64,000 nt of DNA from Orbicella franksi. Lineage: Eukaryota. This document shows, in pieces, positions 38,702 through 58,613 of this stretch. The position numbers and the translations under genes are program-made. Positions within the stretch are counted from its first letter, which is position 1, and each line of letters opens with the position of its first letter. Below the pieces are notes generated by a model, which was not told where the DNA came from, did no database searches, and saw only the letters and a list, made by a program, of their open reading frames with translations. Location: the NCBI GenBank assembly GCA_964199315.1, contig OZ116701.1, positions 24,366,001 through 24,430,000 on the forward strand, written 5' to 3'.

Positions 38702-41700
38702 TGTCATGTTTAAGCTTGCATAAATTAGAATACATTATGTTGCACGTGACGAGTGGTGTTGTTGAATAAACGAATTCAAGATGTCGCTGTGTGCGTCCAA
38801 GTCTTAGTGACAAACATTACATGGTACCAGGAGTAAAATGGATTCGTTCAAGCCTCCGGAAGCTTTGTCGCTTCAAGGAAATCCAAGTGAAAATTGGAGA
38901 AGATGGGTCCAACGATTCGACCTTTATCTGATGGCGTCTGGCAAAATAAAAGAAGACGAGAAAGTTCAGTGCGCGATCCTGCTTCACGTGATCGGTGAAG
39001 AAGCACTGGAAATTTATAATACCTTTAAGTTTGCTACTGGTGAGGATCCAAACAAGATTGCTCATCTTAAGAAGAAGTTTGAGGAGTATGTCAACCTGAG
39101 AAAGAACACTGTGTTTGAAAGATATCGATTTTGGGAATGCAAACAGCAAGAAGGCGAGACAATTGATCAGTTTATCACCGAGCTGAAAACACGTGCAAAG
39201 TCCTGTGGATTTGGCGATCAGCATGACCTCATGATCCGCGACTGAATTGTGTTTGGTGTGAGAGATACCCGACTGAAAGAACAACTGCTCCGTGAATTGT
39301 CAGACCTTACCCTAGAAAAAGCAGCAAGTGTTTGCAGAGCCGGCGAAGCAAGCTCGAGTCAAATAAAGGAATTGGAAGATTCTGACAAGAGCGTTCCAGT
39401 TCATTGGGTCGGAAACAAGTTCAATTTAAGGCGTCCAAAACCGCCGCATCCTAAATTACCGTTCAACTGTTCGAAGTGTGGTACTAAGCATCTACCAAAG
39501 TCATGTCCTGCGTTTGGAAAGCTTTGTCTCGTTTGTAAAGGAAAAGATCATTTCGCCAGAGTTTGTCCGCAAATGAAATCTCCCGTACACGTAGTCACTC
39601 CGAGCGATCAAGGCGCCATTGGTGGAGTCGAATTAGAAGTTCAATCAGATAATGGAGATCAAGAATTATTTATCGGAACAGTGACTAGTGCACCGCCTGT
39701 CGAAGACTCGGCTTGGTTTACGAATTTACGTGTCAGCGGAACACCGATTAAATTCAAACTGGACACAGGAGCCGAAGCGAATGTGTTGCCACTCAGTGTG
39801 TACTTGAAACTCAGAAATAAGTCACCGCTTTCGGAAACCAGCGTCATTCTCTCATCTTATGGAGACTTCAAGGTTAAACCTGAAGGCACACTAAACTTAC
39901 ACTGTGAAGCTCGTGGAATGAAAGAAAACCTGCCATTTTTTGTCGCCGCTGTTGAGTCACCACCGATTTTGGGACTCTCAGCTTGCCAAAAATTAAATTT
40001 GGTCAGAAGAGTAGAGAGTGTTGCCCAGGCGCCACTCACAAAGGAAGAAATTTTGGATGAGTTTCCTGACGTCTTTACTGGACTGGGCTGTATGGAAGGC
40101 AGTTATCACATTGAATTGGATGATACAGTTGAGCCTGTCATTCACCCACCACGGCGAGTGCCATATAGTCTGCTTGAGAAGCTGAAAGAAAAACTCCAGG
40201 AGCTAGAAGAGAAAGATGTTATTCAGAAAGTGGACAGACCCACCCCGTGGGTTAACAGTCTCGTCATTGTGGAGAAACGTGATGGGTCCCTACGCCTCTG
40301 TTTAGACCCCAGAGATCTTAACAAGGCAATTCGCTGAGAGCACCACAGGATTCCAACTGCAGAAGATATAGCAAGTCGTCTAAGTGGCAAGAAAGTTTTC
40401 TCCATAGTGGATGAAAAGGATGGTTTCTGGCAAGTGTGTCTAGATGATGAAAGTTCTCACCTCTGCACATTCAACACTCCGTATGGCCGTTATCGCTTTA
40501 AAAGAATGCCATTTGGTATAAGTTCAGCACCAGAGGTTTTTCAGAAAAAGAATGAATCCATATTTGGAGACATTGATGGTGTGGAAGTCATATTTGATGA
40601 CATAATTATCGCTGCTAAAGATGAGTTTGAGCATGATACACTCATGAGAAAGCTTTTGCTAAGGGCACGAGAAGCGAAAGTTAAGTTCAACCCAGCAAAG
40701 CTCCAGTACAAAGTCAGTGAAGTCAAGTACATGGGGAACATTGTGTCTGAATCAGGATTGAAGCCAGATGTTGAGAAAGTGCGAGCCATAGTTCAAATGC
40801 CATTACCCCAGAACAGAGAAGAGCTGCGGAGATTCTTGGGAATGGTGAACTATTTTTCTCAGTTTATTCCTAATCAGTCAGAAGCTACTGCCCCCTTGCG
40901 AAGCCTGTTGAAGAAAGATGTAGTTTGGATCTGGTCACATGAGCACACACAGGCAGTGGAGCATCTAAAGGAGATCCTGTCAAGTCAGCCTGTTTTAAAG
41001 TTCTTTGATCCTTCTAAGCCAGTCAATTTGCAAGTGGATGCCTCTAAGTCAGGTCTAGAAGCATGCATTCTCCAGGATGGCCACCCAATTGCCTACGCAT
41101 CAAGATCTCTCACCCAAGCAGAAGTTAACTACGCCCAAATAGAGAAAGAACTTCTTGCAGTGGTATTTGGCTGCGAGAGATTCAATCATTATGTTTATGG
41201 TAGACCAGTAGATGTTATGTCAGACCATAAACCGCTGGTATCAATCACAAAGAAGCCACTGGTTAATTCTTCTCCAAGGCTTCAACGCCTGCTTCTGAGA
41301 CTTCAGAAGTATGAAGTCAACATCTCTTATGTTCCAGGCAAATACATGTATGTAGCAGATACACTCTCAAGAGCCTTTCTGAATGAGCAGCCTACAGATG
41401 ATGATTTGAACGATGACATGGAGGTGATGGTCCATAGCCTCATTACAAATCGTCCCATGAACCAGGAGAAATTGGCACAAATGAAGTCTGCAACAGCACA
41501 AGATGAAGACCTTCAGAAATTATGTACAGTTGTTAAGAATGGTTGGCCTTCCCACAGAAGCCAATTGCCTGCATCAATTGCCCATTACTGGAGTCTTCGT
41601 AGTGAAATTCATGAAGTAGAAGGCCTGTTGTTCCTTGGCCAGAGGCTCATAATCCCACAAGATATGAGACAAGCTGTCCTGAATTGTATCCATGAGAGTC

Positions 41701-43150
41701 ACCTTGGTATTGAAAAGTGTAAGTCAAGGGCCAGAGCTGTAGTCTATTGGCCAGGCATGTCTACTGCAATTGAGAGACTGGTGGCTAAATGCCCAGTGTG
41801 TCTCAAGTATCAAAGAGAGAACCAGAAAGAGCCTCTCCTGCCTCATGAAGTTCCCCAGAGACCATGGCAGAAGCTTGGTGCAGACATATTTGAACTGAAC
41901 ACTAACTCTTATCTAGTTGTGGTTGACTACTACTCTAAATATCTGGAACTTTGTCTTATGAAAGACAAGACAGCTAGCTCTGTTATAACTAGCATGAAAT
42001 CAATTTATGCCAGACATGGTATTCCAGATGAAGTTGTTCCCGACAACATGCCCTTCTCAAGCAAGGCTTTCCGTAATTTTGCAAGTGAGTGGGGATTTGA
42101 AATCTCCACATCAAGTCCCAGATACCCACAGTCCAATGGGATGAGTGAAAGAGCAATCCAGACCATCAAGAATTTACTTAGAAAGGCTTGTGCAGACGGA
42201 AATGACCCCTACATTGCTCTACTGGAGTACAGGAACACACCCATCTCTGGACTTAAGGAGTCACCTGCTCAGCTGTTAATGAGTCGCATGTTGAAGTCCA
42301 AACTACCTACTGTGGAGTCTCTCTTGAAACCTCAAGTGGTTGATAGCCCCCAACAGAAGCTGCAACAGCGGAGTGATAAGCAGAAGATGTACTATGACCG
42401 GAATGCTAAGCAGCTGCCGAGTATTAAGGAGGGTGAAACAGCTAGAATAAGAAAAGGAAAGACTTGGGAGCCTGCCATTGTTACTGCACAACATAGTGCT
42501 CCAAGATCCTACATAGTTGCAACACCTGATGGTACCACCTACCGACGAAACCGTCATCACCTGCTCCCAACAGTCGAGTCGCCTCCACTGATCGCAGGAC
42601 CAGCTATTGATGGGCCAGGCGTGCCTGTAGTAGCCGAACCGCCAGTTGCCGTCCCACCACCTGATGCTGCCATGCCCTCCCTAAACTCATCCAGCCATTG
42701 CAGTCCTCAACAGACACAGCGTACTTCCAGCAGCCGAACTGTCAGATTACCAGCAAGATTCAGAGAGGACTATGTTATGAACTGAACTGTCCACACTCAG
42801 TAACCAGACATTGAATCAGACTGTTTTTTTTTTTTTATTTGCTTACTACTAGGCTGTGTTATTGTTGGTTATGGGGAAATTCCAGTTAATAGTGACAACA
42901 GTGTGGAACAGACATTTTTAGCAATTTTCTGTGAACTGTTGTCACATAACTTGTTGACCTACTTTGTTATTCCTTTGTTTTCTTTTGTTTTCGGTTTTGT
43001 TTATTTATTTTTTTTTATTGGAAAGGAAGATGTCATGTTTAAGCTTGCATAAATTAGAATACATTATGTTGCATGTGACAAGTGGTGTTGTTGAATAAAC
43101 GAATTCAAGATGTCGCTGTGTGCATCCGAGTCTTAGTGACAAACATTACA
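38702..43150 (+). mobile_element. Complete Ty3/Gypsy LTR retrotransposon (Mag-like)
   Basis: 120-bp LTRs 38702-38821 and 43031-43150 (4 mismatches by eye), TSD ATAGA, PBS TGGTACCAGGAGT (tRNA-Leu-UAA-like), PPT GGAAAGGAAGA. Confidence 0.97.
38838..42785 (+). pseudogene. Gypsy gag-pol: single frame with two in-frame TGA stops (39243, 40335)
   Basis: IRD*IVFG and AIR*EH replace the consensus Arg. CCHC knuckle, LDTGAEAN, FDDIII, QVDASK, SHLG..KC, PDNMPF, NGMSERA. Confidence 0.93.
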
Positions 43151-43225
43151 ATAGATGATTGTTGACTGTTCTTGTTCAAGAACCCTATCTATCGACGAAT
43201 TCGATCGGATCAGTACAGTAACTGA

Positions 43226-43507
43226 AAATAATTCAACAGAAATCACTCAAATGCAGTGAGATAAGTAAATAGCATAGGAATGAACGGAAAACATTAAATG
43301 AAACAAAAATAAGTTAAATTGCAAAGAATACTCACACTGATGATGAAGATGAGTTCCAAAACCTATCGAAAAGACGAATGTGATTAGATCGGTTACTAAA
43401 TAATTCAACAGAAGGCACTCAAATGAAGTGAGTTAAGTAAATAGCATTGGAATGAACGCAGAACATTAAATGAAAGGAAAATAAGTTAGGTATTTGCACA
43501 GAATATA
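43226..43507 (+). repeat. Imperfect ~170-bp tandem repeat; the second copy is split by the 43508-45829 element and a third partial copy lies at ~45850-45925
   Basis: AAATAATTCAACAGAA..CACTCAAATG...GGAATGAACG...TACTCACACTGATG is repeated; the split copy resumes at 45830. Confidence 0.7.
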
Positions 43508-45829
43508 CAGTACAGCCCAAAAATAATGCACGCGCAAGAAGTGGCGCAAGAAGATCTTACGCTGCAAGAACACGCAAACCGCTGCAAAAAGTAAAAATGT
43601 CGCGTTTTTGCGGTTTACCCGCAAGAACATTCAAAACGTGAGAAGTTGAAAGTCTAACCACAAGAAGCCGCAAGAAGTTGAAAATCTAACCGCAAGAAGC
43701 CGCAAGAACTTATGAATCTTACCGCAAGCCGCAAGAAGGTGCAAGAAGTTGTTGCAGGTCAGACAGTCTGTTCGTTTATAAGTGCTATGTTGGTGGTCAA
43801 AATGCTCAGCGTTTGCTCGCAATGTTATCCATAAGATATGTCACTGCAGTGGGAAGAGATATATTTCCAACAACTGAGACCAGATCTGGATTTATGTTTG
43901 CTTATACTGTGAAAATAATATCGAACGCACTCGCATGTTCATGACACCTACAGGAAAAAAGCCCTTCGATCACTTGCACAGTCTGCTGGCAGATTATGCA
44001 ACAATTACAAAATGTCTCCAAATAATGAAGCTCATGAGGAAACAGTCCACGTAGAAAAATCGAACTACGATGTAGTTAGTCTTGGTTCCAACACTTTTTG
44101 CTTCTGAATGCAAAATTCAGAAGTGTTGTCTTCTTCTTGCGGATATATGAGCGAAGACAACTCAAGGCTCGATTTCCGTCGCTTTCTCAAGTCTGTAATG
44201 GAGTCTAAGAAACCTTTTGTTCAAATCGCACACTGAACCGCAAAGACTGCATGTGCACTACGATGTTGTAAATTTCTTTAAGAACTTTTCGGAGAGTTAG
44301 TATTACAGGCGAAAAGCCCTTGCAGAAAATATGTTGTGTTCCTAAAGAAACAGTAATCAAGGAAACTTGAAAGTCACCTATGGAAGCGAACCTCGTAAAT
44401 TCTACCCTGTTTGCAATGCGGTAAAACATTACCGGTATAACTATGGTTGTGATAAGCACATAAATGATCTTCTGAACAGTGAAATCTCACAAGTTTGCCT
44501 TATGCATTCCTCTTATTTTGAAGAGAATCCCATTGAACGAAATATTTCAAGACAGCATGCACTGATAACAATCATGTTGTTGTGATGCCTCGAATTTGCA
44601 TAAACTCTTCAAACATCACTGATGCGTGAAAAGTCACGCTTTTGTCATGAATGCATGTAGTCCTGTGCTTGTTTTCGCGGACTGAGAAACTTGCTTGTTT
44701 CAAAATTTGGGTTACACTTGGAAGCTACTTCCCAGTAAATATGTGTTTTTTTAACCTTTGTTCTGGACAGAAAAAGCCATTTCAAATAAGCTCATTTCGC
44801 ACTGCTTAATCACACCGCAGGTCCGGGACTCCAGGACACATCGTAATAATAATTGTAAACAGTAAAATTTCCTTCATGTCGCCCAAAGCAAAACAAAGTG
44901 AACCCAGTATCTAATTCAGAACCAACTGATAAAACATGTACTGTTACTAAACTGATGAAAATAAATATAAACCAACAAAAAGCCAAAGGGCTTATCTCTG
45001 TGTCAATCTGTACAGTTATTTTGAGACACTCTCAATTCACAGGTTGCTTAGCACATGACCAAAATCTTTCCACTGTCAGTGATAAGATCTACCAACTGAT
45101 TTATTCGCGAACGAAAACTCTCTCCAAGGACGACCTCAACAGTGTTTAGACTTTATATGGCTTACACTTTAGAACTTATAATATTGGTCACATCATTAAC
45201 AAGATTCCCAAGATCTCTTGTGTAATGGTAGCCGTGTATGTAGTAAGGTCGACGATTTGTTATATTTGTTGACGTTTTGATGGATTGAAATACTGCTTTG
45301 TAGAACATGTAAACAGCAGCTCACGCCGATCAATGAATTTGAAGTTTCATCAAACGCGTATCCGTTCATTACTTTTTCTTTGGCCGTTCCTGGGGATCGG
45401 TCCAAATTTGAATTAAGTTAGACTCATGAAAAGTTCGTGGTCTGAACTGAACTTTAGAGTTTAAATTGTCAAGAGTTAAGAATTTGTCGTTTTAATGCTT
45501 CTTACGGTAAGTGCGGCGCTAAATCTGTTTTTTCCGTTGTGTTTTTTAGGACCTGTCGCCAAGACAGTACTGTCTTAATATGGATTTTCGCGTGCTAAGA
45601 TGTTAGCACAAAGAAGTTCTTGCGAGTTGAAAATCCTACCGCAAAGAAGTTCTTGCGTATCGAAAATCCAACCGCAAAGAAGTTCTTGTGGTTTTAACTC
45701 CTAACCGCAAAGAAGTTCTTGTGTCTTGCAGGATCAAGGTGCAAGCAACCCGCAAGAAGCCGCAAAAAGTTGACAGCTTGCAGACGCAAAAAGAAGTTCT
45801 TGCGCGTGCATTATTTTTGGGCTGTACTG
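43508..45829. mobile_element. 2.3-kb non-autonomous DNA transposon: 33-bp perfect TIRs, TA TSD, CGCAAGAA subterminal arrays
   Basis: TA|CAGTACAGCCCAAAAATAATGCACGCGCAAGAA ... TTCTTGCGCGTGCATTATTTTTGGGCTGTACTG|TA; many CGCAAGAA-like copies at ~43530-43760 and ~45610-45810. Confidence 0.9.
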
Positions 45830-46210
45830 TACTCACACTGATGGTAACGATGGTAGCACAGGAATGAATGCAAAATGTTAAATGGAAGGGAAATAGATTG
45901 TAAAGAATGTATACTCACACTGATCCCAAAGTTGAAGATCGAAGAGGATCGAGCTCAAACAATGTGCTTCCTACTTGTCGCAAGGCATTGTGGTAAAGAA
46001 TGCAACTAAACGCAAGGGATTGTGGTACAAAATGTAAAACAGAAGAAATTGAGAATTTGCGGCCCTTATTGCCTTATAAGCAAGATTATAACTGCTGCTT
46101 CGCTCGCTGTGCAGCAATTATTACAATAATAAATTATTAAATGATTAATAATATTAGTTATGCGCTTTATGAACATTTATCAAAGTATTGTTTCACAAAT
46201 GACCATTTTT

Positions 46211-47078: not shown

Positions 47079-47675
47079 TCATTCCATAAAATTTCTTAGC
47101 ACTTCTTCGGTATCTTCTCGTACTTCTGGGGTATTGAAAAATTTGATATTCTCTCTCCTGGAATAAGCTTCAAGGTAGAGGTTCTTGGAGGTGATGTCGT
47201 TTATTTGGTTGGTGAGCTTTCTCTCACTCTCAATCAGAAAGGTTATTCTTTTATTTTGCTCCTCCATCTGCTTCTTTAACGCATCTTGATGTTCCTTACA
47301 CTTGTCGCCATTGAAACTGCAAGACTTCTTTAATTCTGCTATGTCGTTCTTAGCCTTTGCTTCAAACTCTTCAAGCTTGGCCATTCTTGCCTTGAGGTTT
47401 GCCAAATTGGTTTCAATATTTCTGATGGAGCTTTCAATTGAATCAAGCTTACTCAGTCTTGCGATGATGGAGTTCAGTTCTGCAAATTGTTCGATTTTGC
47501 TGAGAGCCTCCATGATTTCATCATTTGCCTCATAGTCTCTGTTTGGGTTCTCGTCTGCTGTTTCTACAAGATCTCTGAGTTTTTTTGCTTCATGCAAAGG
47601 CAAAGTCTTGTCTCCAGAACTTGTAGATGATCTATTTCTGCGTTTTCTGATAAGGTTAGACAATTTTTCAGCCAT
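47079..47675 (-). pseudogene. L1/Tx1-type ORF1, 5' fragment
   Basis: Long coiled coil followed by LEAYSRRENIKFFNTPE...EDTEEVLRNFM (start of the RRM); cut off at 47079. Confidence 0.75.
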
Positions 47676-49072
47676 GAAAAGCTTTTGGAAGGCAGATGGC
47701 TTTTAGCTTGCTCCTCTGCCATCACTCGGCCCAATCTCCTGTTTAACACTTCTTTGTGTACTGCTACTTTTCTATTTAAATTGATGGGCCTATTGTATAT
47801 CTAAAACCTACATGAGTGACGATTCTCATTTGATGACGGTTTAGCTTGCTAAGTAAAGTTCTGCATTCCACAAAGCTTATGCAAAAGGGTCAACCTGCAT
47901 TGTGAACCGTCAAAATAATAGTTTAGCCATTTCAGGGTTGTTGCGTGACAATAGTCACGCACGTATACTTATCAACAACAGGAGACCAATAACAGAAAAA
48001 TTTGGAATTGAGAGGCAATAACACATCACTATGTACCTTCTTTCCTTCATCTTTTCTCCTAGCAGATTTTTTAGGTCACCCAAAGTAAGAGTGCCCTGTA
48101 ACACAGCACACTATTTTCTAAGTACCAATGCCCTATCCTCACGAAAAACAAATGCAGCGCAAAGTGATGGACTAAAAGTTAAAGGAAGGATTGGAAAAAA
48201 CATTGAAATTGCGTAGCTACTAAAACGCGGAACCACCCAAAACGACCCAAAATGACCCAAATGACCCACAACTATCCACAACGGCCCACAACAAACCCAA
48301 AACGATCCAAAACGACCCACAACAAACCAAAATATTCCAAAACAACCAAAAACGCCTTTGATAGTTTTTAAACACTGTCTTGGATTGTCTTGGTTGACTA
48401 AACTCATCTCCAGGGCTCCCCGACAAAATAAAATAACTGGAAAACAAAATAACTGGATTCTGATTGGACGAGAGCAGTACTCCCTAGGAGAACCTATTGC
48501 TATTTACTTTTCTTTCCGAAGTTGACTGGAAGTCTTCCGACGAATTTCGAAGTTGATCCGAACACTAACGAAAATTTCTGATGTCGATTCGAAGACTTTT
48601 GGAGTTGAACCGAAGTTTTCCAAAGATTTTCCAATGTCAGCCCGAACACTTAGGAAGGTTTCGGATGTTTACCTGGAGTATTCTGAAGACGAACCGAGGA
48701 GGAATTTTGTTGAGGTCGAGCGAATTCCTATACTTATTTTTTTCGTGAGCCTCGAAGGAGGAGGGGGGGTGATGGTTGGCATGAGGAGGGGTGTATCTCC
48801 AATTATTCACGCTATGAAAATGTAGTGTACTGTATTTTAATTGAGAAAATGCCTTGTCTTAAAATGAGTCTGCAAAGACATACCAGCGATTTGTTTTTTC
48901 ACATGATATGCTGTTTCCTCCTCCTCCTTGTCCCCCGAGGAGACTTCAGACTTTACGACTTCCTGAGGCAAAGGGAAGAGCCACGTGACTCCACGTGATG
49001 AAATGTTGCGTTACAGTTACAATTTGGGAGAAAATACAGATCCAATCATTGCCACGCATGCATGCGTAGTCG

Positions 49073-52000
49073 ATGATGGCGGCCTCACAGGAAGACCAAG
49101 AACATATCTCAAGTCCTATCCTATATCCTATATCTCTTTATGCCATAAGGCACATAAGGCTTTGACATTCTCTTTCCAACCACTATGGTTTGCAGCGAGG
49201 TTTCTGACATTCGCCCATGACTGTCACCCAGCTGTTTTCCTTTCATCTTCAACCATTCTCCTCCATGTTGTTTTGGGTCGACCAGGCCTTCTTTTCCCTT
49301 CTGGCCTCCATTCCAGAGCTGTGACACAATGTTCCTCTTTGTCTTTCCTCATTATATGTCCAATCCAATTCCATCTTCTACGTCTGATTTCATCACTCGT
49401 TCTGTTCACTCCTGTGTTCTCCTGAATTTGTTGGTGGGAGATGGTCTGAGGCCATGTTATCCTTAAAATCCTCTTCATGCACTTGTATTGGAAACCGTCC
49501 AGCTTCTTTGCTTCTGTTTTCGTAAGTTTCCAAGCTTCACAGCCATACATCAAAACTGACCTAACAATTGTTTTAAACAATTGTACCTTCGTCTTTCTGC
49601 CAATCTCACTGATGCCCCATATTCTTCGCATCCTATAAAAAGCCTGTCTAGCTTTACTCAGCCTATGCTGTATGTCCTTGGTTGTTCCACCTTCTTTGTC
49701 CAGCAGTGCGCCTAAGTACACAAACTCTTCCACCTCTTCTACCTGTTCACCATTAATCTCTATTTGTTGGTCGTTTTTGGCATTCACCCGCATGACTTTT
49801 GACTTCTTTGCATTGATCTTAAGACCGACCCTTGCAGCTTCATCGGCTAGTCTGTTGGTCTTATCTCTTATGTCGACGTACCTAGACAACAACAAAGCGA
49901 TGTCGTCTGCAAAGTCTAGGTCCTCTAAGACCGAGGTGAACTTCCATTGTATACCAGTTCTTCTACCTTCCGTAGTTCTGCTGATGACCCAGTCAATTGC
50001 AAGTAGAAATAGGAAACCAGACATGACACAACCTTGCTTTACTCTTGACTGGACTTGAAACCATTCTGTTGTTTCACCCTCATCTAGAACTGCACACTCA
50101 AAGTTGTTGTACATCGCCTTCATCAATTCGATAAGCTCTTCTGGGATTCCGTGCATTGACATGATGCTCCACAGACTTTCTCTATGTACAGAATCGAACG
50201 CTTTCTCGAAGTCTATGAAATGGGTGTACAGAATTGCGTTCCATTCGCTGACTTGTTCAAGTATATTCCTGAGAGGAAAGATCTGATCAATGGTGCTTCT
50301 GTTCCCTCGAAAACCTTCTTGTTCCTTCCTCAGGATGTTGTTGACACCTTTTTTGATTCTACTTATCAACACTCTTCCAAAGATCTTACTGATGACTGGT
50401 AACAGTGTAATACCTCTCCAATTTGTACATTCGCATAGGTCACCCTTCTTGGGTAACTTTACTATCAATCCTCTATTCCAACTTTTTGGTGCTACGCCCT
50501 CTTCCTTCACCTTTTTAAACAGTTTTGTTAGTTCCTGTGTTCTCTCATCTAAATCTGTTTTTAGAAGTTCGGCTACTACGTTATCGAGTCCAGCTGCCTT
50601 TCCATTTTTCGTTGCTTTTATAGCACTTTTCACTTTGCTTGGTCGAAATGGTCCAATATCAAATTCTCCGTCATTTTGCCTTCTTTCCATTTCACGGGGC
50701 TGGGTCTTTGTTGAGTACTGCATCAAAGGGTTCTTTCCAGATCTTCAGTCTTCTGCTCCCCTCATTTGTCGGTCTCCCATTTTTATTGTTTACTGCTGTA
50801 CTCACTCTTCTCATCTCACCCGTCAAGGTCTTCACTATTCGATGTAATTCCCCATATCTCAAGTATGGATACTTTATGTTTGTGTTTTCATATGACCGCT
50901 CTGTAGCTTGTTACCTTTTTTGTAACTTTGAGCTAAATAGAACTTTATTTAAGAAAAGCCAATTCTACTCCTTTGATGCTGATAAACAGCCCTCTCACGG
51001 CTTGCTTCATTCATTTCTATTTCTTATTTTGTAGAAGTCATTATTTCATCTGATTCATATGACACAGAAAATGGTGAGTGACTTGGGCTAGAACTATAAT
51101 CTTTACTATAGTCATTAATGAAATTTTTCACTTCACAAAGTACAGATTTTTCACTTAGCAAAGTAGAGATTTCGCAAAGTACAATTTTGCAAATTACAAT
51201 AAATAAACATGCTTCCCTTATGTATTTGCAGATCTTCCACAGTATCTATCGTCAGCAAGGCCACCAAAGCTGGAGGAAAGAGGTGCTGTTCATAAGGTAA
51301 AGCTTCATTTGTAGGGAAATTCTCAAATGTTGTTTGTGTGATTGTAAGGGCAAGAATATGAAGGTGCTATTGCTTCCATTTTCACTGTGGGGGACGTGTG
51401 GATTTTCACCGACTCAAAGCCGGCCATGAAGTTACATTTATTTGATATAAGCAACTGGAAGCTAAACCTCAGAAATCGTTTTATCCATTTTGTACGGCTG
51501 GTCATTTTAGCAAAGGACAAATTTTATACCGTTAAATATCTGGTTGGGCCACAGTTTAATTTAATAGGGCAAAGGTCGCACTTTTTCCACGATGTCGCAG
51601 CATTCTGCCACAGGGGGGTCGAGGGGGCGCACGTTTGCGAAATATCTTCTTTTTCGATTCTGTTTCATGTACGGTTTGTACCAATGATTACTTCAAACAG
51701 CAACTCCGAGCTCTAAAAGCAACATTTCATCAGCTTAAGAAACAAGCTGACTAATTTGGACCTTATAAGTCTGCACACCAGGCGTCTTTGCGCCATTGTG
51801 ACACTAATGATGGATGATAAATGATCCCGGTGTTTCAGGTTTGATTTAATTTTTTTCCATTTAAGTTTTTTGATTGGAGTTTTTTTTACCAATTCCCATT
51901 TAAGTCATTTAGCATGGAAGATATGGCCTGCTTTGGGGCAGAACACCAGTACGGTTTCCTTGACCACATGTCTACTCATGACACAAAGGTCGCACATGTC

Positions 52001-55000
52001 ACGCAGAATTTGTGTGGTAAACATAGGTGCTAAATGGGACCTCTGCTCAATGAGAGTTATCTTTCTGATCTGAGCGTAACGGAAATTATAGCCAAAATTC
52101 TAAGTACTGGTAAGGGAAACAGTTTTTTTTCGTTAAAAAATTGAGTCCACTTTACGAAACAGCAACCAGAGGGCATTATCGTGCTGTGATCTGAAATAAG
52201 AACAAACAGGGTTTAGAAAGCCCGTTTCCGGTAGTTAGGTCATCTGGCGGAAAACGGACTTTTCTCGCTTGCAGTGCACCATTTTTTACCGACCAGTTTT
52301 CTGGTCGGTGAGGGACTGCAATGGGTTGAGATGTAAGAGAAGCTATAAACGTGGGTCTAACAAAGCTTGGCTTCAAGTAAATTCGATGAGCACAGTTTTC
52401 ACAGACAATTTAGTTGATCAGCTTTCTTTGTCCAGCCTCGCACCAACGAAAAATTCTCAGTTCACGCAAGCTGGCGACTTGGTGAGGCCCGTTTTAATAA
52501 AGGCTTTCGGCGATAACTCGGGTTCGAAACACCTTCCACGCACAAGATACAGACTGTTTTTTTCGATTTTGAGGAAGCACTGACCGGGAAACAGATTGCT
52601 AGGGTCATGTCAATTTATTGTGAAATTCACACGCATATCCAGTCATTTGAGGAATGATTTGAATGAGCGATAAGCAGGCGGGCTGTCAAATTAACTTCAC
52701 ACCCATCACTTTTCATGGCTACAATATGCAAATTAAATTTAATCTCTTGCAGGCGGAACAAGTCAAATAGTTTGAAAGCTCAAGAGAAACCTCGGAAGAC
52801 TGCGCTATTTAATGCGTGCGGTTCTCAATGTTATTTTGAAAATTAAGAATTCGCTTTTCAAGGCGCAAACTGTCATTACATTTAACAGGAAAATTTTGAG
52901 AGGGTGGTAAACGGGGGGTATAGATCATGTTTCACTGAAAATAAAACAGCCCTTTCACAATTCACGAAAAATATATTGACATTTCACGGGAAATAAGAGA
53001 AAGTGTTTTAGAAAATCACGGTTCACAGCTACTATGGAAATCACAATTCACGAGGAAAAAAATATACGTGTTCAGTTTCTGGTGTGCCGCTGGGACTTGC
53101 TGGGACCCCTCCACTTCCCGTTTTCTATTTTGCATCCCTATAAGACTAGACACCAAAAATCTCCATTCCTACCCCTATCCCTACCCTATTCCAGACTCGT
53201 TTGTTCTGTATACTTGCTGAAAACATGATTCCTTAAGAGAAACATTATTCTGTTATATCTTGTCTTAGGATTGTCAAGAGCTCAAAAGTAGACCGGAGAG
53301 TATTCTCTCATCTTGTTCTGGGTGAGTGACAACATCAATACAACTTGCATGTAGTTTATAGTTTCTTTTCAGTATTCATTTTATTATTGTTACTTCTGCA
53401 TCATATGTCTTTAAAGAAATTACCCTTAAAAAACGCTTTTATGTCTAACAGAGAATTTGACAGCTACATTAATATCGATCAATATCCGATACATTAATAT
53501 AGATTAATATCTTTCCACAGGGAGAAAAAGGAAACTATAGAAAATCTGGAAGGAGATCACCATAGCATTCTTAATATCCTCCTACAAAATCCTGAAGACT
53601 TCAACCTCAAACAGAAGCCTTCCGGAATAAAAGAGAACAAGATGTTCACGCTGGATATGAGAGAGATTCCAATATCATCTGCCAAAGCAGATGACGATGG
53701 GTCATATATCTCCAAAAGCTCTGCTACAAAGTTCTATATGTACAATGCGGAGGGGTCGCGCACATCCCACAAGGATGAAAATGGCAAATGGTACGTCAAC
53801 ATCAGAACCTTGAAAGGATACAAGAGACAAAACATTCCAGAAGACGAAATATACGAGCTTAGACGAGAGTACCACACAAGTAAGCACAATCCTGATTTCT
53901 CTCGATCGATTACCACAGTTAAAGCTTATACAGAAAAAGAACCAAGGCCCTTTTATGTTGTAATGTATAAATGGGCAGATGGGGTGGAACAACACTTTAA
54001 GCTTCCTCGGCACGGAAACGCCACCAAACCCACCAGTGGTCAATACTACAGGAAGGATCCCAGTCTTTTCGCCAAGGTCGATAATATGCTAGAAAAGGGA
54101 TTATCGACGGAGCAAGTTTATAATTCCATTGCCAGAAAGGGAGCCGGTACAGTTAGCGAAGTTATATCTGGTCCCAAGTTAGTTGACAACAGAAAGCTAT
54201 CGTTAAAGGCGAAAGAAACTTCAACTTGTTCCACTGGCAAGAAAAAATTCAAAAGTGAAGCAGAGGAGATGGTTTCCTGCCTACAAACCGTTTCTCTCCT
54301 CCAAAGTGTAACATTCACGAAAGAAAGTTACATTGCTTTCAATAGTCTCCCCAACATGATCAATGACTTACACCGCTTCTGCGTAAATGGCAATGTGATA
54401 CTCTGTGTGGACACAACATTCGAACTTGTCGAAGGGCTGTGGCTCACTGACATGACTTACACAAATGAAGCCCTCACTAATTTGAATGGTAAAAACCCAG
54501 AGTTCCCTGGGCCCAACTTTTGGCACTTTCGCAAAACCAGGGACTGTTATCGAAGATTTGCTGGCGAGCTTGTGATTAAGAAGCCAGAGCTGCTCGGAAT
54601 TAAAAAGATTGGCCATGACTTAGATAAAGCACTATCACAAGGACTATGTGACATTTTTACAGATGCCAAGAAGCTTTGGTGCACTCAGCATATGCAAGAG
54701 CACGATCTCCAAAAGCTCAAATCTCTTGGGTGTAACCAACGGTCTCAGTCGAGGGTGATGGCTGATATATATGGAATGCAAGATGATGTTCTTCTACAGA
54801 ATGGTTTAGCAGACACTGAGGACGAATGCGATTTTGACGCTAGACTGGAAAGTTTAAAGCCTGTGTGGGAAGAAATAGCCCCTGGTTTCCACCATTGGTT
54901 CAACAGCAACCGATCGAAGCTGTTCAAAGATTGCCTCGTTCTCTCAGCAAGGGAAAGTCTGAGCATTGAAGGCAGATTTTACACAAATGGGCTCGAATTA

Positions 55001-56184
55001 AAGCACAAGCTTCAAAAGAAGAAAATGGCCGAAGAGGATGTCCCTAAAGAGGTGGCAGCCGTTACTTCCCAACTGCTCACGTGGGCAGAGGACTTCTACT
55101 TGGAAGAAGAGAGGGCTATACAAGGTCTCGGAAAGTACCGTCTTGCCGCCGGATATGACCGTTTTCAAGTAGATCCCGTAACGTGGAACAGATGGGGCCC
55201 AGCAAGGCAGGCTCAACATCTGGAAGCTTTCAGAGCCTTTGTACCAGGCTTGTATGACACCTACGTCAAGGCGAAGTCTGCTGGTCTGAAAGTGACTCCA
55301 AATGCTACGAAAAGAAGAATGCATTTACCTGAACCAGAATTATTTACGGACCGCATTTCACCACCAGCTTGCAAGAAGGTAGCTGTTTCACCGTTGGTCA
55401 TCTCTAAAGTTGGCAAAGAAGCCAAATGGACGGTAAATATTTAGATACGACATAGACATAAAAACGTAATGCTATTGATAGTACCCCTTTAGATAGAAAG
55501 CAATCATAAAGTTAGTAACGCTGTCAAGTTAAAGTGTGATTCTGTGAAAACTGACCAAATTCGGAGTTTTACAGGTTGTTGAAACTGGAGAAAACATCAA
55601 TGTGTCTCAGTCGACCGTGTTTTGTTTTATCAACTTGATTAATAAAATAAAAGCGAAATTTTAATAACTACAGTCACATACCATTTATTGAAATATTGCA
55701 ACAGTTATATTGTGGAGCTAAGGTAACTCATTCCATTATTGATGCTCGCAATGTCTTTTGTTTTTGTTTTTCTTTGTGTTTCATTGTTTAGGTAAAACCA
55801 AAGAAGGATGCTCCAAACCTGCAATTACTGGATCCAGACAGAATTTCTGGGCAGCAGTACGAGCTAGTTTGTAGAAATGACCATAAACTTTGTCCAAAAA
55901 ACATGCAAAGGTGTGAACAGTGCAGGGTCGCATTTCACCAGGCTGACATCGTGTTGGTCAAGACGGTTGGAATTCGTGAACGGACAGACAAGAAGACAGG
56001 AAAGGTTGTGAAATACGCGGGGAATGTGTATCTCCATTATCTCACAAAGTGTCTCAAAGAGTTCGATCAGCGTTTCTCATTCTCTGCCATAACCGTGCCA
56101 GCAAGAACACTTACATTCTTACCTGAAGGGAGCCACAACAGCTTTGTAGCGAAAGGGTTACAAGTTGAACATGATGAAAAGTAA
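49073..56184 (+). CDS. MULE transposase, six-exon model (49073-49112, 51035-51073, 51232-51296, 53269-53321, 53521-55432, 55792-56184), 833 aa
   Basis: All introns are GT-AG with matching phases (2502 nt, no internal stop). Motifs: LCVDTTF (D), PEFPGP..WH..K, KIGHDLDKAL (D), WCTQH (CxxH), FYTNGLELKH (E), C-terminal CEQC...H...C. The large exon is secure; the small 5' exons are a manual prediction. Confidence 0.8.
49115..50852 (-). mobile_element. 5'-truncated RTE-clade LINE with a 12-bp TSD
   Basis: Uninterrupted 500-aa RT ORF 49224-50726 (KLPKKGDL..C.NWRGI, FIDFEKAFDSVHR, VKQGC, LDFADD, RRRRWNWIGH, GRPKTTWRR); GATATAG-type tail at ~49115-49140; TSD CATATCTCAAGT (49103-49114 / 50853-50864). 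Confidence 0.95.
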
Positions 56185-56221
56185 CTTAGTGTGGTATTTT
56201 CGAACATGATAACATTAACTC

Positions 56222-57108
56222 GTGCCTTAACAGTGTCGAAGTCAGTGAGCATCACCTGTCTTGGTAATTATATTACGCTATGTCGCCTCAACATTGAAAT
56301 GCATTCAGAGATATGTTAGGAAATCTTTTTATAGTTGTTGTTCTTGTTTTGTTATAGTTTTTTATATGTAAAGGGAGAGACACTTGTGCCTTAACAGTGT
56401 CAAAGTCAGTGAGCTTCACCTGTTTTGGTAATTACATTAAGCACTTTCTCTTCGATAAGGAAATACATTCAGAGATATGTCAGGTTATCGTTTTATAATT
56501 GTGGGTCTTGAAAAGTTTTCGATATAAAGGGAGAGACGCTAGTGCCTTGACAGTGTTGAAGTCAGTGAGCTTCACCTGTTTTGGTAATTACATTAAGCAC
56601 TTTCTATTCGATAAGGAAATGAACTCAAATATATGTTAGGTTATCGTTTTATAATTGTGGGTCTTGATAAATTTTTGATGTAAAGGGAGAGACACTTGTG
56701 CCTTAACAGTGTCAAAGTCAGTGAGCTTCACCTGTTTTGGTAATTACATTAAGCACTTTCTATTCGATAAGGAAATGAACTCAAATATATGTTAGGTTAT
56801 CGTTTTATAATTGTGGGTCTTGATGAATTTTTTATGTAAAGGGAGAGACACTTGTGCCTTAACAGTGACGAAGTCAGTGAGCTTCACCTGTTTTGGTAAT
56901 TACATTAAGCACTTTCTCTTCGATAAGGAAATATATTCAGAGATAGGTTATCGTTAAGAATTGTGGGTCTTGATAAGTTTTTGATGTAAAGGGAAAGACA
57001 CTTGTTCCTTAACAGTGTCGAAGTCAGTGAGCTCCACCTGTTTTAGTCATCCTGGTTTAGGTAATTACATTAAGCACATTCTCCTCGAGAACGAAATGCA
57101 TTCAGAGA
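56222..57108 (+). repeat. Tandem array of ~156-bp units (~5.7 copies) in the MULE 3' region
   Basis: GTGCCTTAACAGTG...AAGTCAGTGAGC recurs at 56222, 56386, 56542, 56698, 56854 and 57004. Confidence 0.92.
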
Positions 57109-58089
57109 AATATATTTTTAAGTAGGAATAGGCACTTGTTCGGTAAATCAATAAAGTAAATTAGAAGGATGAGTATGTCTCATATTTAATTTATTATTAC
57201 GTTATGAAATGTTGAGGGCCTGCCTGCAGTCAGGATCGTCAACGTCAGCCCCTTTAAAAAGAACTCCTTCAGCACCAAGATATGAAGTCTTTAGCAGAGA
57301 TAAATTTCATATCTCCAAGCAACCATGTAATATTCTGTTTATTATAACAAAAACCTACTAATTACGATGTTTTTGAAGATTTTCCGAAGATTTCAAAAGA
57401 TTTGCAAAATGTTGTCCGAAGGTCATATGAATGTCTCCGAACATTTTCCGAATTTTTTCGAGAATTTCCGAAGATTGCCGAAGATTGACAAGGAAGATCT
57501 GATGATGTTTTGACTTAATATCGATTTACTTTCGCTCATTCAGCATTTAAACATGGCAAACTTGTCACAAAATGTTTCGAAATCGATATCTTAACATCGG
57601 GGAGCCCTGGGGACGAGTTTAGTCAAACAAGACAGTGTTAACTATCAGAGGCATTTTTGGTCGTTTTGGAATATTTTGCTTCATTTTGGGTCGTTTTGGA
57701 TCGTTTTGGGTTCGTTGTGGATGGTTGTGGGTCGTTTTGGGTCGTTTTGGGTGGTTCTTCGTTTTAGTACTTACGATTGAAATTGGCATCTCAAAGAACA
57801 GGCCTCTTAATATTTTAAGAGAGGTAATGATACCAGTAAAATTAAACACCACTAGTGCATGAGCATTTTTTACACCTTCCTCAAGAGCAGCACATAAGGA
57901 GCTTTTCTACTGACAGATGGTACTGGTGATTCCAGATTTAAAGCATCAACAATCATTTACAGCATGGCAACTTTCAGCTTTCTAAGCTTTCTATCCCAAA
58001 CTAAACTGTAAATATTGAACGGAAAAGGACCGCTTTCCTTGCTGAGGCGAAGTTATATTCTTCCTCTACCACACGAAGATCTATTTCGA

Positions 58090-58613
58090 AAACTAGTTGA
58101 GAGCGCCCTTTTGCAGAAAGGCAGGAAAAGTACAAGGAAATCTGCTAGGCGGAAAGAAATTCAGAGCTTGCAAAGAGTTTTTCTCCACCAGCGTCTTTGG
58201 CGTGTCTCATTTCCGTGGTGACGACCTCGGGATTTATTTTCTTGCTGTTCCTTGCACGATATTGAACTTTGCCTCCAAATATTCCCGTTGCTTTTCATTG
58301 AACTTGTACGGTTTTTTCCACCCCTCAAGGCCCACCCTTCGTCAGAAAAAAGTGATGCTACGTTGGAAAACGTGGGTTAAAATGGTGTCTTAGGATTACG
58401 GTAAATTGACCATTGCACATTACCTGGCCTTGTAAGAAGCAGCTTCCACTCGAAGTCAACACCAGAATCATTGCTGATTTTTTGAAATGCAAGATGATTA
58501 TACATTTTCTTTGTACATACTTGTATGGTAACGCATTTTATATCAGCAGGTCTTTCCTTACTCGAACTGCACTCTCCACCCACTAGCGATGAAGAACCAC
58601 AAGCGCATGCCAT
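58090..58613 (-). pseudogene. Internally deleted Sola-like transposase relic (N-terminal exon next to the C-terminus)
   Basis: Cys-rich N-terminus CGSSSLVGGEC...EWKLLLTRPG|gt, then WALRGGKKPYKFNEKQREYLEAKFNI...KINPEVV..EMR.AKD...SEFLS..QIS.YFS, homologous to the C-terminus at 31744-32100. The catalytic core is absent. Confidence 0.55.

Follow-up and report, generated by a model that had tools for sequence, protein, structure and literature searches.

A transcribed, probably Mutator-like DNA transposon delimited by inverted repeats and a 10-bp target-site duplication in the coral Orbicella franksi

The stretch analysed here (the window: 64,000 nucleotides of the stony coral Orbicella franksi, assembly GCA_964199315.1, contig OZ116701.1, positions 24,366,001 to 24,430,000; C4:24366001-24430000 in our contig numbering) holds at positions 48212-57775 a 9,564-bp element with long terminal inverted repeats (TIRs), a six-exon transposase gene, a subterminal minisatellite and a nested retroelement. 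Very probably it represents one insertion of a cut-and-paste DNA transposon of the autonomous type within the Mutator-like elements (MULEs). Positions without a contig name are those of the window.

A repeat search over 47500-58500 returned three inverted arm pairs, namely 48212-48259 with 57728-57775 (48 nt, 90%), 48256-48366 with 57640-57750 (111 nt, 86%) and 48386-48423 with 57597-57634 (38 nt, 92%). They outline a 5' TIR of about 212 nt on the plus strand (48212-48423), which begins CGTAGCTACTAAAACG, and a 3' TIR of about 179 nt on the minus strand (57597-57775). Both TIRs are made of subrepeats of about 10 bp, the 5' TIR containing about 12 copies of a 10-bp subrepeat at 48231-48354, and the 5' terminus recurs in five other genomic copies. 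Directly outside the TIRs lie two identical copies (10/10) of ATTGAAATTG, at 48202-48211 and 57776-57785, forming a target-site duplication (TSD). MULEs are expected to have TIRs of tens to hundreds of base pairs and TSDs of 8-11 bp; the arms here are 86-92% complementary in blocks and are kept in sister copies, and the TSD is 10 bp both here and in those copies.

The sequences on either side of the element (47740-48211 and 57776-58300) are part of a repeat that is dispersed over the genome, with 13 or more further copies that are 82-88% identical. At two paralogous empty sites, C11:13406818-27 and C3:15795264-73, the two flanks run into one another and share exactly one 10-mer, a single ATTAAAATTG standing between them in the alignment. 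Since the flanks are joined there through a single 10-mer, the 9,564 bp are one insertion with 10 bp of target duplicated, and the element is a single TSD-flanked insertion into an older dispersed repeat. A preliminary description of this DNA, made from its letters alone, had read the inverted repeats of about 200 bp and the exact 10-bp duplication as the limits of one insertion, and had proposed a search for empty sites and for further TSD-flanked copies. The boundaries and the one-10-mer sites on C11 and C3 agree with that reading, and the genome-wide TIR search recovered TSD-flanked copies, with duplications matching at 10/10 and 9/10 positions.

The six predicted exons (40, 39, 65, 53, 1912 and 393 nt) have GT-AG borders and phases as predicted. 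In a survey of sequencing runs, at least half of the sampled words of 53269-56184 were present in 20 runs from 13 studies, 13 of these runs being labelled as RNA. Two raw runs and two contig runs, the latter (X1 and X11) from different studies, were aligned to a family copy on C7 that is free of the nested retroelement and has its six exons within 6 kb (L013:3400-9399). Contigs of both X1 and X11 contain joints that skip 359, 199 and 2022 nt, and X1 also one of 158 nt; all joints are CT..AC ended, that is GT..AG on the gene strand, and they are exactly introns 5, 4, 3 and 2 of the window copy (exons 6/5, 5/4, 4/3 and 3/2). Every exon from the second onwards, all on the plus strand, is thus touched by a joint: exon 2 (51035-51073, 39 nt) by the 158-nt joint of X1, a contig of which also departs exactly at its acceptor; exon 3 (51232-51296, 65 nt) by the 158-nt joint of X1 and by the joint of 2022 nt on the C7 copy in X1 and X11; exon 4 (53269-53321, 53 nt) on both sides in X1 and X11; exon 5 (53521-55432, 1912 nt), an open frame of 637 codons for an N-terminal beta-rich domain and a DDE domain, by the 199- and 359-nt joints; and exon 6 (55792-56184, 393 nt including the stop) by the 359-nt joint in X1 and X11.

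Where the contigs depart from the C7 copy, they have the window copy's letters at 33 of the 40 listed positions; the transcripts therefore stem from this locus or from an allele of it carried by another colony. No intron-less copy occurs among the matches of the core-exon and exon-6 genome searches, which are limited to the listed copies, and introns 4 and 5 align in those sister copies that retain these parts; the joints therefore reflect RNA splicing rather than DNA structure. A processed retrocopy as their source is unlikely, since the searches match known copies only and the aligned sisters keep their introns. The locus is transcribed, and introns 2-5 are spliced out exactly as predicted. 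Of the six-exon model put forward in the preliminary description, the lengths, the borders and four of the five junctions stand, including those of micro-exons 2-4 and of the last exon, seen in RNA contigs from two studies; the use of exon 1 is the part left without RNA support. Introns are already known in MULE transposase genes (MuDR). Separately, contig depth in X1 rises to about 340 over some 50 nt at L013:6603-6654 (about 52970-53020 of the window, in intron 3), with loose ends on both sides, probably a short repeat common to abundant unrelated transcripts. An X11 contig also leaves the reference at the border of intron 5 and exon 6 (L013:3834) with 27 unrelated letters, at a depth of 375 (L013:3800-3999), perhaps through a repeat or the use of an alternative junction.

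Predicted exon 1 (49073-49112, plus strand, 40 nt) opens with an ATG, and 2 nt past its boundary lies the insertion point of a 5'-truncated, RTE-like non-LTR (long terminal repeat) retrotransposon on the minus strand (49115-50852). The reverse transcriptase (RT) open reading frame (ORF) of this nested element (49224-50726, minus strand) matches Pfam RVT_1 (E 8e-30); the element has a short 3' untranslated region, ends in a short TATAGGA-type repeat and is flanked by a 12-bp TSD, CATATCTCAAGT, at 49103-49114 and 50853-50864. The alignments of all three long sister copies run from the 5' TIR to position 49114 and resume at 50853; because they skip 49115-50852, the RTE-like element is a later insertion specific to the window copy. 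At the exon 1 border the sister copies read CAA/GTATGG and the window copy CAA/GTCCTA; the ATG and the GTATGG donor are kept in all three sisters. Gene models of Pocillopora and Stylophora (P0016 and P0036) contain in their N-termini 'MASFQEDPE' and 'MAAS...EDPE', weakly collinear with the 'MMAASQEDQE' of exon 1. We infer that exon 1 was the start of the ancestral element's frame, and that the window copy would at best be weakly able to make a full-length transposase. The transposase had been called apparently intact; that description is overstated at this point, where the RTE-like element, 2 nt after exon 1, changes the donor context from GTATGG to GTCCTA.

The catalytic core lies in exon 5. 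In an alignment of 25 sequences D297 (VDTTF), D366 (GHDLD) and C387 (CTQH) are invariant, and H390 (CTQH) and E492 (TNGLELKH) nearly so, which bears out the D/D/CxxH/E core reported earlier. The corresponding codons start at 54410 (D), 54617 (D) and 54995 (E), with the CxxH at 54680-54691. E492 stands within N-x2-E-x2-H, the catalytic spacings are 69 and 126 residues, and the arrangement is the DDE triad with C/D-x2-H that is expected of MULEs. Homologues with 37-73% identity occur in Pocillopora, Stylophora, Exaiptasia, Rhopilema and Clytia, none of which has a precomputed Pfam domain; a further protein, P0001, is 89% identical. No relative came up among PDB sequences in profile searches. Paralogues from the coral's own genome match the core exon with E 3e-30 to 3e-37 at 28-30% identity; their Pfam matches are to PF10551 MULE (E 5e-6; 27.2 bits, the cut-off being 27.6), PF00872 Transposase_mut (E 0.004; 16.6 bits, the cut-off being 21) and PF04434 SWIM, the MULE and SWIM scores lying just below the Pfam curated cut-offs. 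The nearest ESM Atlas clusters of the core are MULE clusters (score 0.95, 181 shared features), with Cnidaria as the commonest phylum.

An AlphaFold model of the core (pLDDT 82.5) has its best fold match, in both Foldseek (E 1.5e-4) and the aligner VIA (Z 11.8-13.2 over 230-236 residues), in the IS256-family transposase ISCth4, so that the catalytic fold is nearest to the IS256 type, as would be expected of a MULE. ISCth4 (PDB 6xgx, 6xg8 and 6xgw) is the best structural match for the catalytic domain (residues ~253-544 of exon 5), at 7-9% sequence identity, but lacks the beta-rich N-terminal and the CCHC C-terminal domains of the coral protein. IS256 is a recognised prokaryotic relative of Mutator (10.1101/2021.09.26.461848). 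The Mutator placement thus follows from the motif, the paralogue bridge, the ESM Atlas clusters and the fold.

Exon 6 encodes a C-terminal CCHC domain, conserved across Cnidaria, the ligand codons of which start at 55912 (C), 55921 (C), 56035 (H) and 56050 (C). It is 72% identical to its Pocillopora counterpart and 38-43% identical to the C-termini of medusozoan (jellyfish and hydrozoan) homologues, and among exon 6 homologues C44, H82 and C87 are invariant and C41 nearly so (90% or more). The earlier proposal of a CCHC finger in place of a SWIM domain holds. The same module ends distant, SWIM-bearing paralogues in the same genome, and since it stands there beside SWIM, the CCHC domain is an addition to SWIM and not a diverged form of it; the family described here has lost a recognisable SWIM. 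Among other MULE families in the genome, some of which have long open frames (665-795 aa), two on C10 (L010 at 8.21 Mb and L011 at 0.29 Mb) combine a SWIM-like finger with the same CCHC domain, and one (L009, C8:1.90 Mb; open frames of 487 and 331 aa) has a SWIM-like motif only, without a Pfam SWIM match.

Pfam gave no match on exon 6, including zf-PARP PF00645 (E <= 1) and PHD; ESM Atlas returned unnamed clusters with scores of at most 0.88; a word-based search for homologues of the P0033 C-terminal region retrieved the query itself only; and the domain had no sequence match in PDB. In a structural model (pLDDT 86) the top fold match is with the Zn1/Zn2 fingers of PARP-1 and the finger of DNA ligase III-alpha (Foldseek E 0.02, probability 0.97), which share the CCHC ligand order and are matched over nearly the whole domain. 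VIA independently ranks these PARP-type fingers first as well, at Z 5.2-5.4 over 80-92 residues (rmsd 3.5 over 80-85 residues), below the tool's clear level of about Z 8; at such values the likeness may extend to the general arrangement only. The ligands of zf-PARP are spaced about Cx2Cx28-30Hx2C; the coral domain is Cx2Cx37Hx4C and has no PF00645 or other sequence-level signal. On the model, then, the domain may weakly resemble PARP-type zinc fingers, a resemblance to be taken as a lead only, and a literature search found no PARP-type zinc fingers in transposases. It is conceivable, and on balance doubtful, that a cnidarian-wide MULE lineage and its SWIM-bearing paralogues carry in this unnamed CCHC domain a diverged break-sensing finger of the PARP/ligase III type and that, separately, the window copy is nearing co-option, being transcribed from an outside exon. 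Were the finger of this kind, it would be a module with which a Mutator transposase could recognise nicked or hairpin intermediates or transposon ends.

The family was surveyed across the whole 497-Mb assembly by a six-frame search with the core exon and a TIR search, which yielded six TIR-bounded or TIR-bearing elements. Besides the window copy (C4, 48212-57775 of the window) these are two complete copies at C7:7147366-7158724 and C12:15004004-15011986, a 3'-truncated copy starting at C12:14612436, an internally deleted copy at C7:13941643-13948857 and a 0.8-kb element with the same TIRs at C4:17060914-17061738, likely a non-autonomous derivative of the family resembling a miniature inverted-repeat transposable element. 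The complete copies on C12 (15.00 Mb) and C7 (7.15 Mb) have TSDs of CATCTAAGAA (10/10) and ACATATACCT/ACAGATACCT (9/10), respectively, and such dispersed TSD-flanked copies would be indirect evidence for excision and reinsertion. Divergence between copies is 2.9-3.2% in the core exon and ranges from 1.1 to 4.6% in the introns and the 5' region. The lineage-specific ratio of nonsynonymous to synonymous changes (N:S) is 21:9 for the window copy and 12:4, 13:6 and 17:6 for others, with 1506:405 sites, and purifying selection on the window copy, looked for by N:S and by the comparison of exon and intron divergence, was not detected. Exons 2-6 are all open in the window copy only; every other copy is frameshifted, truncated or deleted, with a 2-nt deletion in exon 6 of a C7 copy, a 1-nt deletion in exon 5 of one C12 copy and the loss of exon 6 in the other C12 copy. 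By these counts the copies have been decaying almost neutrally since a shared burst. The suggestion of a young, possibly mobile family is not upheld, given a divergence of about 3%, exons as diverged as introns, the N:S of 21:9 and the broken state of all other copies. Present in few copies and decaying neutrally, the element is an ordinary representative of its cnidarian transposon family.

A minisatellite of 5.3 units of 156 bp (56218-57044) precedes the 3' TIR; the copies on C12 and C7 have about 7 and about 27 such units, respectively. A subterminal tandem repeat, long TIRs and a C-terminal non-SWIM finger are the described traits of Rehavkus elements, reported from arthropods and annelids (PMC6446971; 10.1101/2024.12.02.626372). 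Cnidarian MULEs on record include MuDR-1_NV and the 'Ghost subgroup Cnidaria', with a TIR of 177 bp (PMC6446971). Like these animal MULEs, the coral element is bounded by long TIRs (here about 180-210 bp) and a 10-bp TSD, and its one transposase gene encodes a DDE core with CxxH behind the second D and a fold nearest to IS256; it differs from them in the lack of a Pfam MULE or SWIM match, in its six exons, three of them micro-exons of 39-65 nt, in a CCHC domain without a Pfam family and in the subterminal minisatellite.

Several observations weigh against an autonomous-type MULE at this locus. The Pfam profiles MULE, Transposase_mut and SWIM give no match to the core exon (a 600-aa ORF) at E <= 0.1; the window protein stays below the gathering scores of PF10551 and PF00872, and its link to them is transitive, via the paralogues only, so that the direct MULE match anticipated in the preliminary description did not materialise. 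No exon 1 junction occurs in the RNA contigs, the donor context of this exon has been altered by the RTE-like element, and the single contig that extends 5' of exon 2 (from one run, X1) leaves the reference exactly at the acceptor, without exon 1. Two raw poly-A runs labelled with the species name, X23 and X24, yielded 3 reads and none, respectively, too few to test expression. No sign of current mobility was seen: near-identical copies are lacking in the genome, and substitution is neutral. The missing Pfam match could in principle point to a transposase of another RNase-H-fold superfamily (hAT, P, Transib or RAG-like) with a superficial MULE likeness, the more so as Hermes, the P element and RAG1 also score Z 8-10 against the core model. 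These and the integrases stay at VIA Z <= 9.7, however, both aligners place ISCth4 at the top with a distinct lead, and the paralogues reach the MULE and Transposase_mut profiles. TSDs measure 8 bp in hAT, 7-8 bp in P and 5 bp in Transib elements; the 10-bp TSD, the long TIRs and the CxxH after the second D fit a MULE rather than any of these, and we consider another superfamily extremely improbable. A narrower question is whether the family sits in the Rehavkus branch of the MULE superfamily and not in the canonical Mutator/MuDR lineages. Its long TIRs, a minisatellite of variable copy number close ahead of the 3' TIR and a C-terminal zinc finger that is not SWIM are exactly such traits as Rehavkus was described with (PMC6446971; 10.1101/2024.12.02.626372). 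Yet Rehavkus has a 9-bp TSD and a PHD finger, whereas all three complete coral copies have 10 bp, the host is a cnidarian, and the C-terminal domain is a CCHC with no PHD match and only four conserved metal ligands (C41, C44, H82 and C87). Distant paralogues in the same genome moreover pair this domain with a SWIM-like finger, like canonical MULEs. On this comparison of described traits, membership of the Rehavkus branch is a minority possibility.

The RNA data bear on a further alternative, in which the host uses the window copy as a transcription unit or as a portion of one, so that the transposase gene would be chimeric or domesticated and driven by an upstream promoter beyond the element. 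Ahead of exon 2 the X1 contig has 29 nt that match 37708-37736 exactly and uniquely in the window, part of a putative upstream exon (37708-37737, plus strand, 30 nt, followed by GTTTGT) 10.5 kb upstream of the 5' TIR, and cis splicing from the window is the simplest reading of this junction. The 30-nt piece is open in the transposase frame, no other copy has exons 2-6 all open, and RNA of the window copy occurs in 13 RNA-labelled runs, all of which would suit host use. Against it stand the N:S of 21:9 and the equal divergence of exons and introns, which leave selection on the window copy undetectable, the intact TIRs and TSD, the limitation of the junction to one contig of one run, and an in-frame TGA at 37704 should the upstream exon extend further 5'. 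The upstream exon also sits within a three-copy repeat, one C5 copy of which has the identical 29-mer. As neither the upstream piece nor exons 2-4 contain an in-frame ATG, a chimeric transcript would start a long frame only at 53642, and such a start would drop the conserved ILNILLQNPEDF motif, which lies upstream of that point in all homologues. Host use is hard to credit, and the decaying MULE remains our preferred reading.

Under that preferred reading, a MULE landed in an older dispersed repeat, duplicating 10 bp of the target. Its transposase has a short acidic leader from the micro-exons; the large exon supplies an N-terminal domain rich in beta strands, followed by a DDE domain with an RNase-H-like fold of the IS256/Mutator type, and the last exon a CCHC zinc-finger domain. 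The protein would presumably cut at the TIRs as other MULE transposases do. The RTE-like retroelement followed, 2 nt past the exon 1 donor, and the locus is still transcribed, one transcript fragment apparently starting from the exon 10.5 kb outside the element.

In published surveys, cnidarian MULEs have been described mostly from catalytic domains (PMC6446971). The element reported here adds a cnidarian MULE whose limits are fully set by its TIRs, its TSD and paralogous empty sites and whose exon structure is verified by RNA, and it exposes a family, widespread in corals, jellyfish and hydrozoans, that the Pfam MULE profile misses. Its unnamed conserved C-terminal finger and Rehavkus-like minisatellite could help to place the lineage in the Mutator/Rehavkus tree. 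How such elements are known to work is left unchanged by the finding; two minor points attach to it, namely what the C-terminal domain is and the chimeric transcript.

Other repeats and retroelement-like sequences lie in the same window. A minus-strand coiled-coil ORF resembling LINE (long interspersed nuclear element) ORF1 (47079-47675) adjoins its target repeat. The repeat that contains the upstream exon is a low-copy unit at 35740-46108, the two other genomic copies of which lie at C5:23.43 Mb and C5:17.25 Mb, with 94-96% identity among the three; in the window it is interrupted at 36686-37502, 38702-43150 and 43509-45853. Within it sits an LTR retrotransposon (38699-43150, plus strand) that is absent from the C5 paralogue, with gag, protease, RT and integrase ORFs at 39249-42785 and LTR remnants at 38699-38821 and 43028-43150 (97% identical). 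Given the positions of these remnants, the idea that the 37.7-kb exon lies inside the 5' LTR of this neighbour was rejected. A second LTR-type retroelement, on the minus strand at 27021-30414, contains integrase, RT and protease ORFs.

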